A stretch of DNA of 63,805 nucleotides, filler included, from Hyphochytrium catenoides (Eukaryota > Protista > Hyphochytriomycota), in assembly GCA_900088475.1 (NCBI GenBank). It is 17 parts of 17 records of this genome, joined end to end, with 100 filler letters (N's around TTAATTAATTAA, not from the genome) between each part and the next. Parts side by side here need not be neighbours in the genome. Positions count along the whole stretch, not along the records: positions 45,789 to 49,719 come from FLMG01002664.1; 16 more parts are not named here. The stretch is one strand, 5' to 3'. The notes under the pieces are model-generated. The model ran no database searches and had not been told where the DNA came from. It was given only the letters and a program-made list of their open reading frames with translations. Position 1 is the first letter of the stretch, and each line of letters starts with the position of its first letter. Below, piece by piece: positions 45,198 through 49,819 of this stretch. The position numbers and the translations under genes are program-made.

Positions 45198-46907
45198 CTG
45201 GGAAACGACACTTTCTTCTCTGCCCGCATGTCCTCTTCTCTAATTTGTTGGCTTGCTCGTCTACTTCCAGGGTTTCAGGAGATTGCTGATCGACGACGAT
45301 GAAAGACGGAAAAGAAAGAGAGAGAGAGAGAAGTCTAAGGTTAGAAAGGGGAAAGTGAGAGGGAGAGGACAAGGAGCAGTGAGAATGATGATAGGAAACG
45401 GAAGAGGGATAGCGATCATCTGCGTTCCACAAGGATCCTCGTAACACTTTTCTATCAAGGATATAAAGGGAAAAGATCAGGAGAGAAACTCGCAGGATTG
45501 GAGGAAGAAAGAGAGGAGGAAACAATATCATCCGGGAGAGGGAAAGCATCTTGAAGAAGGTTGGTCGCCCGACAGACAGTTCAATCGAGAGAGAGAAAGA
45601 GTGAGAGAAGAGAAAAAGAGAGAGAGGGAGAAAGAAGAGAGAGAGAAAGAGAGAGGGGGAGCGAGAGATAGAGAGAGACGGGGGGGGANNNNNNNNNNNN
45701 NNNNNNNNNNNNNNNNNNNNNNNNNNNNNNNNTTAATTAATTAANNNNNNNNNNNNNNNNNNNNNNNNNNNNNNNNNNNNNNNNNNNNTCAATGAATGCG
45801 ACCACACTGCTCCTGACGGCTGAACCTCTTCTCACTATGCTTGTGCCTTCAGTGAGAAGCAACAGCTATAGATTATCTAGCTCAGACGCAGCGCCACTGC
45901 TGCCAGTTCCTTCAGAAGAGGAAGGCTAGTCCTGTCGGAGACGACGTGGATGCGAGTCTTTTGAGTCTCATCAACATCTTCCAGCACTGCTGGAGATGGC
46001 CAAGAAGGCAACCTTCTGTCTTCTTGCCTTCACAGCTCAGCCGCTGGAGACTCTACTACTGCTCGATGGCCCCAGAACTAGCGATGTCCTGCTCGCCAAA
46101 GTGGTCAAGAAGCGGTGCCCTGAGCTTAGGAAAGTGCTGGACTTGTATGCGCTTCCAGGCTCTGCTCGAGCTGTGCGTTGCACACGAACTTACTCTTAGG
46201 TCTAGGAGCTTTATCGACGTCATAACATGAGAACCCGCGGCATTGATAAAGAGCAGGGCAGTAGGATAAGAGGCAGTGTCCCAAAGAGGTAAGAGCAAGC
46301 GTCGCTGGTGCCATTGCGGCTGACTTCTATGATGCCCTGGCGGCACTGCAGGAGCCCGTGCGGACCTCAGGAGCTAGTCCAGAAGTGAGCGGTTTGGCTC
46401 CTTTTCACTTCTTTATCAAAAGCCTTTGTTAAGAAAGAAAGACTCAGCCATGCACCTCTTTCTCTACGTCTGCTCTGACAAAAGAGAGAATCTCTACTCT
46501 TTGTGCTTGTTGATCGGTCACTGTCTGTCACCTAACATCTTCTCCAGTGGCCACCGCGCTGCTACGTCGATGGACCTCTTTCCCTGCAGTTGTTTGACTG
46601 CCTTTGTCCGAGCTTCTTCTTCTCTATCATCTCCGCTGACACAGGCAGTACGAGGATGAGCTGCACAGCAGATTAGCTTATTAGTACGTCCTACGCGCTT
46701 CTGACACTGAGAGGAAGAATGACAGGCTCGCTATAGAGTTACGGCTCTGATCATGAGCAGTGAGGACTCGTCAATGGGTCATAGGAAGTGCTTATAGCTG
46801 TTAAGCAGTAGAGAAGCTATGCAGAAGACGAAGAGGAAGAGAAAGAGAAAGCATGGTCAAGCCCAAGAGTCAGCGAGGTCTTCCAACGTGGCAGCTGGCT
46901 CCCAGAA

Positions 46908-47546
46908 CTACTCTTCAATGATCTCTTCCTCTTCGATGATCTCTTCTTCAGCAGCAGCCTCATCTGCCTGAAGCCGCCTGCCTTCTTCTTCTTCAATGAT
47001 CTCTTCCTCTTCAATGATCTCTTCTTCAGCAGCAGCCTCATCGGCTTGAAGCCGCCTGCCTTCTTCTTCAATGATCTCTTCCTCTTCGATGATCTCTTCA
47101 GCAGCAGCAGCCTCATCTGCTTGAAGCCGCCTGCCTTCTTCTTCAATGATCTCTTCCTCTTCGATGATCTCTTCTTCAGCAGCAGCCTCACCTGCTTGAA
47201 GCCGTCTGCCTTCTTCTTCAATGATCTCTTCCTCTTCGATGATCTCTTCACCAGCAGCCTCATCTGCTTGAAGTCGCCTGCCTTCTCCTTCGATGATCTC
47301 TTCCTCTTCGATGACTTCTTCTTCCTCAGTCTCAAGCTCCTGCAGACTTCTTGTCCACACTTCCTTCGCATCATAAACAGCATTCACCTGGACTTGACGC
47401 AGGTTGCGTCGCTGGGTCGGCTCGACTCGAGCAATGATACCATCTGCCGCAAAGCTGTCCGAAGATAAATTGGATGCGGCTGACAAGGTTGAGGCCGAAG
47501 AGGCGGCGATCACTTGCAGGAGGAGGAGGATGCTTGAGAGCTTCAT
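46908..47546 (-). CDS. Secreted Glu-rich tandem-repeat precursor with RRL spacers (intronless)
   Basis: Signal peptide MKLSSILLLLQVIAASSA, followed by six ~24-aa units (QADEAAAEEEIIEEEEIIEEEG). The units are separated by five RRL spacers and preceded by RSL. Indels between units preserve the frame. Confidence 0.8.
   Translation of the reverse strand: MKLSSILLLLQVIAASSASTLSAASNLSSDSFAADGIIARVEPTQRRNLRQVQVNAVYDAKEVWTRSLQELETEEEEVIEEEEIIEGEGRRLQADEAAGEEIIEEEEIIEEEGRRLQAGEAAAEEEIIEEEEIIEEEGRRLQADEAAAAEEIIEEEEIIEEEGRRLQADEAAAEEEIIEEEEIIEEEEGRRLQADEAAAEEEIIEEEEIIEE
46911..47330. repeat. Coding minisatellite, ~72-78-bp unit x ~6
   Basis: TTCTTCAATGATCTCTTCCTCTTCGATGATCTCTTC..AGCAGCAGCCTCATCTGCTTGAAGCCGCCTGCC is repeated in tandem. 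Confidence 0.95.
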
Positions 47547-47876
47547 GATGGGTCTCACTTCACTGGGTGTTGCTGGTCTCTTGTCTTGTCAGATAAACCT
47601 GAAGACTATCGTCCTTTCTTTCTTTTCTTGGTGCTCTGGAGAAGGAAGGAGTCTGCTGCTTGTGAGCTGGGCAAATTGGAAAGTGAGAGGAGATGCAGGC
47701 GACGGCGCTGTTCCACTGAAGAAGGGATCCCAAAAATCTATCCATCATTAGTACTCTTCCCTATGCCACAGGCAGTGAGAGAGGCTCGCTTCTTTCCTAT
47801 CTGTCTACTTCTTCAGATGGTGATGCGAGGTATGCAGCGCGCTCATCATCGTCAGGTATATGTACAAAGAGAGAAG

Positions 47877-47924
<48 letters not shown>

Positions 47925-49819
47925 CAGAGAGAGAGAGACAGAGAGAGAGGAGCCACCTTCCCTGTCATGGTCACACTGTCTTAATCATTTTACTAGCAGT
48001 GAGATGCAGGAAGAACAAGAAGTGCACGGGATGCAAGGCGATCAGAGACCCAGACTGAGGAATGGTTGAGCCATCCACAAGCTCGCGAGCGTGGACTCCA
48101 CAATCTCTTTTGATGAAAGACCTGGCTAGCTTAAGCATCTGCTTGCTCCATTGGAGAAGAAGGAAGAAAGAGGCTCCTGGTCCTCTAAGGTTGACCTTCT
48201 GTTAAGGCTCCGAGCGCTATGCAATACCTTGGACAGCTTGTCAATAACAGGCCAAGCTAGTGCTGGCGGCAACATCTAGAGAGGAGTAGAAGCGGACGAT
48301 CGAAGAGAGGACCAGCGGCGAGAAGCGGCCTCCTTTTATAGATTTTGGCTTCTGTCTATAGATTCTTCCCTCACTGACTATCCAGAAGAGGGCCAGTCCT
48401 TGAAAGCTGGCTGCTGCTCCTCTTTCTCTTGGGACTGAGGGCGGGAGAAGGCCACTCTCGGTCATGACCTGCTATCGGACGCGGTCCGAACAGCCAGGCA
48501 GCAGCGGCAGAAGGAGAAGGAAGAGTCTGAAGTTGGCACTAAGAACTAGACGAAAGACAGGAAAGAGGGGAAAGAAGCCGACAGGATTCCATCAAGGGAA
48601 GACTAAGATGACGCCGCAGCTTGATTTTATCCCTCGACACATCTTATCCTCCTCTGCCATCCAGGCAATCAACAACTGAAAGGCACCTTCTCCTCCTTCT
48701 ACCGTCAGTATTCTTTGGTTCTTCACTCGAACGGAGCTCAGCAGAGGCCAAAGAAGTGATAGGCAAGCCGAGAGGAAGGAGAGACCAGATCGTGCACCTT
48801 GAGCTGCAGAGTCATACCTCGCCAGCCTTTCAGGCTTCGCAACGATCAGCGGCAGGGACGAGGAGCCAAGATCACATCGTTCTATCATGGTGGCGTCCAT
48901 CCGTAGGTGAGAGAGGGCGGGCCATCATCCTCAAAAGTGGCTGAGGAGGCAGAAGGCTAAGTCTTTCTCATCAAGATCTCAATAGCCGACGGTACAAGCG
49001 GCTGGCTAGGGCGGCTTGTGCTGCAACGAAGACCTCCGACCCAAAAGCAAGAGAAGAAAGAAGGAAAGAAGACCAGACAGCGGACAATCACCTCATGCGC
49101 CCCAACTTTAGATGGAGACAAGGAGGCCTGTGTACACGCTGCGCAGACAAAGCCGCGTCTGCTAACAAGAAGAAGGCTTCCTGCTGGTGTTGCTTGTGGA
49201 GGAAGATGGGCAATGTCACGTTGTGGTTGAAGCTTCTGAGCGAGATGAGGAATGTGTCTTAGCCTCTCTTCTTAGGCCTGATAGGCCTTCTATACTCGGG
49301 AGAGGTGATCGTTGCATCCTGCCTCCTCGTTGGCTTCCTTTATTAGTCGCCGGCACTAGCGTTGGCATTGCCAGCCCGCCTTTGTATGTCCTCTTGGGAC
49401 CGTCAGTAATGTATGATGACAGCTACTCTTAGACGTCTTCAGTCTATGAAGAAAGCAAGCAGGCACACGCACCGGCCCTAGTGTCCAACAGAGAAGGCGC
49501 GTGTGCATAGGCCCGGAGACACGGCTCGCAGAAGTAATCTTAGAAGGAATGATGCTGAGTAGCTGCTCCGAAGCAACGACCTACTAGGAGGAGGGTCGGA
49601 AGGAAGGGAGGACTACTCGTGTCCATCAGCAGCAGCAACCCCAGCATCAAGAGGGGAGCCTGAAGTCAGAGAAGCAAGCCAGCAGCAGCGACACCAGCAC
49701 GAGGACGACGTCGACGAAGNNNNNNNNNNNNNNNNNNNNNNNNNNNNNNNNNNNNNNNNNNNNTTAATTAATTAANNNNNNNNNNNNNNNNNNNNNNNNN
49801 NNNNNNNNNNNNNNNNNNN

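Follow-up and report, generated by a model that had tools for sequence, protein, structure and literature searches.

An orphan gene predicted to encode a secreted repeat protein whose acidic units are bounded by R-x-L motifs

Does a minus-strand reading frame built largely of near-identical acidic repeats encode a protein, and might that protein be a precursor that is cut into small peptides? The frame lies within a window of 63,805 nt (the whole stretch of DNA that was analysed) and runs from an ATG at 47546 to a TAG stop codon at 46908-46910, giving a product of 212 aa. It is the one convincing gene, on the minus strand, in the piece at positions 45789-49719. The first-pass annotation had read the frame as a signal peptide, a pro-region with RRNLR and RSL, and six peptides joined by RRL, and this layout is borne out by translation of 46908-47546 (Table 1). 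The annotation had also remarked that the last unit stops just short of a spacer. The translation agrees: the protein ends in ...IIEE-stop, two residues before the EG-RRL that would be expected there.

Table 1. Features of the reading frame and of the DNA just upstream of it. Positions count along the whole window; aa numbers refer to the 212-aa product.
Feature	Position	Strand	Remarks
Complete coding sequence, 212 codons + TAG	46908..47546	-	intron not required
Signal-peptide-like N-terminus, aa 1-18	47493..47546	-	hydrophobic core; small residues at -3/-1 (ASSA/S); read from sequence
Pro-region 1, aa 19-49 (31 aa)	47400..47492	-	ends in RRNL (47400-11; aa 46-49); translation
Pro-region 2, aa 50-68 (19 aa)	47343..47399	-	mildly basic; ends in RSL (aa 66-68), then Q; translation
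Acidic unit 0, aa 69-92	47271..47342	-	diverged copy; ends in EG-RRL; net charge about -10
Acidic unit 1, aa 93-116	47199..47270	-	ends in G-RRL
Acidic unit 2, aa 117-141	47124..47198	-	ends in G-RRL
Acidic unit 3, aa 142-166	47049..47123	-	ends in G-RRL; allele with in-frame CAG insertion at 47098 (+1 Ala)
Acidic unit 4, aa 167-192	46971..47048	-	ends in G-RRL
Acidic unit 5, aa 193-212	46911..46970	-	stop codon precedes spacer
Pyrimidine tract ending in AG, ~90 nt upstream of ATG	47636..47651	-	no ATG between tract and start; read from sequence

The N-terminus reads MKLSSILLLLQVIAASSA and is signal-like. Its core, LSSILLLLQVIAA, has a mean Kyte-Doolittle value of 2.36 (aa 3-15), and the highest 11-aa Kyte-Doolittle value of the whole protein (2.52) also falls within this N-terminal stretch. 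Judging by the residues themselves, the predicted leader cleavage could occur somewhere in aa 18-24, with RRNL then lying 25-31 aa past it. RRNLR occupies aa 46-50, and within it RNLR (aa 47-50) also reads as RxLR, while RNLRQ reads as RxLxQ.

The rest of the protein consists of six units of 20-26 aa joined by five RRL spacers, one unit being diverged and the other five near-identical. Every unit begins with Gln and has two Ile-Ile pairs set within Glu runs, and the first five end in Gly-Arg-Arg-Leu. Across aa 69-212, Glu makes up 45 per cent of residues and the net charge is -59, or -9 to -11 per unit. The units had been said to hold no Ser, which is correct for units 1-5 (they also lack Thr and Tyr); unit 0 has one Thr. 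At the DNA level, Tandem Repeats Finder reports a period of 75 nt with 5.5 copies and 92 per cent matches at 46912-47324. The spacings between repeats are 78, 75, 75, and 72 nt, all divisible by three.

An open frame across such a repeat proves nothing on its own, since the same is true of three frames out of six. The locus could then be no gene at all but a 75-nt minisatellite, open in three frames by chance, one of which meets an ATG. The surrounding DNA is full of simple purine and pyrimidine runs, and the product has neither a relative nor a Pfam match and is given a low recognition score by a language model, all of which would suit a minisatellite. What speaks against it is that the acidic frame alone runs on for 68 more codons (aa 1-68) through unique sequence to an ATG and a textbook hydrophobic leader, and that the stop codon stands exactly at the end of the array. 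Moreover, the differences between units are biased to third positions. Among the columns that vary between units, codon positions 3:2:1 of the acidic frame are represented in the ratio 10:5:3 (a small sample), and in units 1-5 the codons for Gln, Ile, and Arg, and those for RRL as a whole, vary only synonymously, as do most of those for Ala/Glu. We regard this bias as moderate support for the acidic frame. Length changes are also confined to 3 nt inside the gene, where the sole polymorphism listed is an in-frame CAG, but take values of 1, 2, and 5 nt in the flanks. We conclude that the acidic frame is very probably a real gene, and that a chance minisatellite is a highly improbable explanation.

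Two other frames across the repeat were considered and rejected, namely a 188-aa Lys/Arg/Ser-rich frame on the minus strand (46817-47383, with an ATG start) and a 140-aa Phe/Leu/Ser-rich frame on the plus strand (47046-47468). Neither has a leader and in neither do the variable sites fall at third positions; both are by-products of the stop-free 75-nt unit. The codon use of the accepted gene is characterised by a GC3 of 47 per cent and by GAA being commoner than GAG. Its start can be placed with the help of an allele that lacks 5 nt at 47555, which is 9 nt upstream of the ATG. As this deletion falls between an upstream GTG (47558) and the ATG at 47546, it rules out the GTG and leaves the ATG as the usable start.

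Both DNA runs of the source organism contain two haplotypes at ~1:1 depth, locally 3-5 per cent apart and with many small indels (46608-46633). Differences between them occur across 45789-49719 (e.g. 46531-46671, 47720-47749, and 48297-48478), and the assembly looks like a mosaic of both. The ~1:1 depth indicates that the host is a heterozygous diploid or a dikaryon. In the pro-region, the second haplotype carries N26I, L27V, and A34T together with three synonymous changes, and the frame is kept. Haplotype divergence is 6/186 nt in the pro-region and 8/317 nt in the flanks, and constraint on the pro-region is thus weak, because the haplotypes differ there about as much as they do in the flanks.

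A relative with ~95 per cent identity is found in a soil metagenome at a word depth of 5-15x and, like the second haplotype, covers aa 1-108. The five gap letters in it are accounted for by the 5-nt deletion upstream of the ATG, which leaves the coding part free of listed frameshifts. As for transcription, the hint consists only of repeat contigs of 48 and 105 nt (depth about 3) in the run of another organism, which was guessed to be RNA.

We searched for further relatives at several levels. The word-indexed protein search gave no match to the whole protein or to aa 1-90. A full HMMER scan of 1.84 billion representatives (E <= 0.001) returned one match only, P0001 (1412 aa, eIF3a-like, with ISEGRRPQ-type repeats), which was rejected as a chance match to unrelated EGRR repeats. 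Pfam returned nothing but a sub-threshold DUF3653, and the ESM Atlas feature search gave no usable match. Among metagenome contigs, 600 peptide-pattern matches yielded 0 confirmed cases, and a degenerate 38-nt repeat pattern had 0 matches. Exact look-ups of the 212-aa product, the 188-aa alternative frame, and a 66-aa flank ORF found all three absent from the record, and the peptide strings had no match in the collection of papers that was searched. Low-complexity sequences match poorly in searches of this kind. Because the unique 90-residue N-terminus is also without matches, we treat the gene as an orphan for now. The claim of an undescribed family thus holds in the narrow sense that the protein, HMMER, Pfam, ESM Atlas, and metagenome searches found no relative.

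How the product might be processed is suggested by the distribution of the R-x-L motif. The unique region aa 19-92, the diverged unit 0 included, has three RxL (shuffle p about 0.01) and two RxL(x)Q (shuffle p = 0.001). All seven RxL sites precede Q or RQ. The five RRL sites should be counted as roughly one observation, because duplication produced them.

Our preferred reading is that the gene is real and restricted to its lineage, and that it encodes a secreted polyprotein of repeats that would be cut at R-x-L into polyanionic peptides. Drawn from sequence features, it stands in our estimation at slightly under an even chance. The signal peptide would bring the precursor into the ER, and a secretory-pathway endoprotease would cut after the Leu of each R-x-L (P3 Arg, P1 Leu), a mode of cleavage known from diatom RXL precursors and from the PEXEL/TEXEL aspartyl proteases. 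The applicable protease varies with the host; in a fungus or an animal, the cut would come after the RR pair instead. We favour ER entry and a cut after each R-x-L because of the motif itself and the layout described in the diatom literature. From such cuts we infer, as products, two pro-peptides and six peptides of ~20-26 aa, each Gln-initiated and with a net charge of about -9 to -11, and any trimming or function of these peptides is likewise put forward as a proposal. As soluble polyanions, they could condense or neutralise polycations (long-chain polyamines, basic proteins) or divalent cations, either in a secretory compartment or in the cell covering, and their Ile-Ile pairs might favour self-association once the charge is screened.

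The first-pass annotation had gone further and suggested an N-terminal pyroglutamate, C-terminal amidation, and a role in biomineralisation. All three are conjectural. The first two are feasible as chemistry, but pyroglutamate would form only with a cut after Leu, and amidation would also require removal of Leu-Arg-Arg together with an amidating enzyme. If the host were a silicifying or mineralising stramenopile, the peptides might represent a new class of RXL-released biomineralisation polyanions, Ser-free and unphosphorylated, rich in Glu and Ile and with N-terminal pyroglutamate, that would replace phospho-silacidins as the counter-ion organising long-chain polyamines or cations; we would call this a long shot.

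Several known precursors have a comparable layout. In Sil1p an RXL site comes after the leader, and the repeats close with RRIL or RRNL, which are missing from the mature peptides; the repeats of silacidin, cingulin, and frustulin also have an RXL at their end (PMC4557024). Sin1 has a signal peptide and then about 30 aa ending in RRL (PMC5525289), and cleavage at RXL falls on the C-terminal side of Leu (10.1101/518332). Our protein shares the Sin1-type arrangement, an RXL that closes a stretch of about 30 aa after the signal peptide, in the form of RRNL at aa 46-49. Sil1p of Cylindrotheca fusiformis is alike in having a signal peptide, an early RXL, and tandem units with RRIL/RRNL; our protein has RRNL after the leader and RRL after the units. 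It is unlike our protein in that an acidic N-terminal domain is followed by repeats that are strongly basic (Lys/Ser) and heavily modified.

The silacidin precursor of Thalassiosira pseudonana (Wenzl et al. 2008, as summarised in PMC4557024) is likewise secreted and highly repetitive, and it releases acidic, Asp/Glu-rich peptides at the RXL ending each repeat. According to the same summary, these peptides act as polyanions towards long-chain polyamines and their activity requires phospho-serine (PMC4557024). The label 'silacidin-like' given by the first-pass annotation consequently survives in part. A secreted repetitive precursor with acidic units bounded by RXL (five RRL, plus the RSL before unit 0) fits it; phospho-serine and sequence similarity do not. 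Where silacidins are Ser-rich and phosphorylated, units 1-5 are devoid of Ser, Thr, and Tyr, rely almost wholly on Glu, and follow a regular Ile-Ile/Glu4 pattern. Neither the 1.84-billion HMMER search nor the word-indexed search found a sequence relationship to silacidins, which were judged by their published description. We do not consider the protein a member of the silacidins, because the phospho-serine chemistry is absent and no sequence relationship was found.

Outside diatoms, sorghum Siliplant1 (Slp1) is also a secreted repeat protein in which RXL ends some of the repeats, and it has been proposed to act in silica deposition. Unlike our protein, it is rich in Pro and Lys and basic (pI 9.3), it has just three RXL sites, and the two share no sequence similarity. 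The diatom-type reading as a whole fares in the same divided way as the silacidin label: the layout matches the RXL precursors of the literature, but the motifs fit TEXEL/PEXEL, RxLR, and Kex2 equally well.

The chain might also stay whole. It would then be a secreted or lumenal acidic repeat protein of ~190 aa, in which RRL is structural (Arg-Glu salt bridges along a long helix) or a plain spacer, and which would serve as a high-capacity, low-affinity cation buffer or as a matrix or cell-surface polyanion, like calsequestrin or chromogranin. The Glu content and net charge of aa 69-212 given above would suit such a role. In addition, AlphaFold2 without an alignment predicts that aa 43-211 form a single long, unbroken helix, for which the local confidence is high (pLDDT 85, pTM 0.37). 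If real, this helix would suit an uncut rod equally, which weighs against the polyprotein, as does the fact that the searches gave no relative to show that RxL is kept between species. Single-sequence helix predictions for Glu/Ala-rich runs are unreliable, however, and poly-Glu is non-helical at neutral pH. A further point against a rod is the small hydrophobic moment (0.57 at 100 degrees); with this low moment and with Ile pairs that do not lie on one face, an amphipathic helix or coiled coil was rejected. Finally, RxL with Q is also found in the non-repeated pro-region (p = 0.001), where it can have no repeat-structural role. We consider an uncut protein unlikely, whether as buffer or as matrix polyanion.

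Processing could, on the other hand, follow the dibasic pair rather than R-x-L. Kex2-processed repeat proteins are defined by a signal peptide and near-identical repeats lying between KR, RR, or KK (PMC6339444), and our protein agrees formally with this definition, with RR between all units. As a precursor of the Kex2/furin type (in a fungus a Kex2-processed repeat protein, in an animal or alga a pro-hormone), it would be cut after RR, a carboxypeptidase would strip the RR, and the Gly might be amidated; the peptides would then begin with Leu-Gln. Such processing would explain the Gly-Arg-Arg context at every spacer. The fungal proteins (alpha-factor, Ustilago Rep1, and those of the ustiloxin type) are alike in having a signal peptide, near-identical peptides, and dibasic spacers, and many of them are genus-restricted orphans. 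The 1:1 haplotypes would suit a dikaryon, and the close relative is abundant in a soil metagenome. Fungi are the commonest soil eukaryotes.

Yet RSL contains no dibasic pair at all, and what RNL (in RRNL) and RSL have in common is Arg-x-Leu. The element common to all seven sites is R-x-L, and the peptides would be unusually long and polyanionic when set beside those released by Kex2. The surroundings are a further difficulty for a fungal host, as flanks of ~1.1 kb and ~2.1 kb without a gene signal (longest stop-free stretch <=148 aa) are sparse for most fungi. The non-coding DNA, at 52 per cent GC and with moderate deficits of CpG and TpA (0.62 each), also has a strong AG/CT excess of 1.58, which is not known as a trait of fungal genomes. 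Kex2/furin-type processing is in our judgement distinctly unlikely.

The same motifs can also be read as export signals. PEXEL is RxLxE/Q/D at 15-30 aa past the signal peptide, plasmepsin V cuts RxL, and ASP5 cuts RRL after Leu (PMC4764566). Our protein contains RRLQA five times, along with RNLRQ and RSLQE. It might then belong to a parasitic alveolate or oomycete and be an effector aimed at that parasite's host, or a vacuole protein, with the acidic repeats as delivered cargo; RNLR (aa 47-50) would serve as an RxLR, or RNLRQ and RSLQE as PEXEL and RRLQA as TEXEL, cut by an aspartyl protease of the plasmepsin V/ASP5 type. With RNLRQ 25-31 aa past the predicted cleavage, the distance is at or close to the longest given for PEXEL. 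ASP5 for its part recognises the consensus RRLxx and is strict about Arg at both P3 and P2 and about Leu at P1 (PMC4764566). TEXEL/PEXEL substrates such as GRA16 and MYR1 share the P3 Arg, the P1 Leu, and the cut after Leu, and RRLxx matches five of our sites exactly, but these substrates have one or very few sites and not one per repeat boundary. Gene-poor surroundings and a relative in soil would also agree with an effector.

As to the identity of such a parasite, a GC of 52 per cent would suit coccidia, but coccidia are haploid, and the ~1:1 haplotypes in both DNA runs suggest a diploid or dikaryon. GC3-rich genes are typical of Phytophthora and Pythium, and the codon use reported above is unlike theirs. 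Oomycete RxLR effectors carry the RxLR some 30-60 aa or less from the N-terminus and, after it, an acidic dEER stretch. Our protein has RNLR at aa 47-50 and an acidic run from aa 69 on, although an EER triplet after the RxLR is lacking. Pfam at E <= 10 gave no RXLR or WY-type effector domain, and the predicted model is one helix. An effector or vacuole protein is in our view improbable. Diatoms, other stramenopiles, dikaryotic fungi, and several further groups are all possible as host.

Returning to the secreted polyprotein cut at R-x-L, the gene as read from its sequence is a variant, without relatives, of a known design in which a signal peptide precedes repeats that have a basic-Leu processing site at their boundaries. 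R-x-L-cut repeat polyproteins are the diatom route to small charged peptides that shape silica. We know of no identified protease for the diatom R-x-L site, and to our knowledge every acidic peptide described so far depends on phospho-serine. A Ser-free polyglutamate version, if true, would mean that the precursor-and-RXL design serves a wider range of polyanions. The unit peptide would be cheap to synthesise for precipitation tests with silica or calcium, and seven clean R-x-L sites in 212 aa make the protein a handy reporter for finding the enzyme. Should the host be a parasite or a fungus, an export-element protease or Kex2 would have in this protein an unusual substrate with multiple sites. 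As one orphan gene on a short contig, its value is that of a lead, and interest in it would be much greater if the host mineralises and the peptides occur in its covering.

We also surveyed the rest of the piece. All 20 stop-free stretches of at least 70 aa were compared with Pfam and gave low-complexity noise only, and an Rfam scan of the piece gave only sub-threshold lncRNA noise. The latter includes a match to HOTAIR_2 at 46401-46464 on the minus strand, which scored 26 bits against a gathering score of 60 and was taken as noise. Besides the pyrimidine tract upstream of the ATG (Table 1), a second long pyrimidine tract ending in AG is present at 46820-46855 on the minus strand, 55-90 nt past the stop codon. 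To judge by their letters, both tracts may be splice or trans-splice acceptors, or may simply be CT-rich background. Towards the end of the piece, two 26-mers containing CAGCAGCAG (49626-49704) have 73-77 per cent identity to the Ala-coding part of the repeat unit, a likeness that is probably a simple-sequence coincidence. Lastly, an (AG)41 microsatellite with 85 per cent matches lies at 47868-47949, ~320 nt upstream of the gene, and the contigs of all DNA runs end there.
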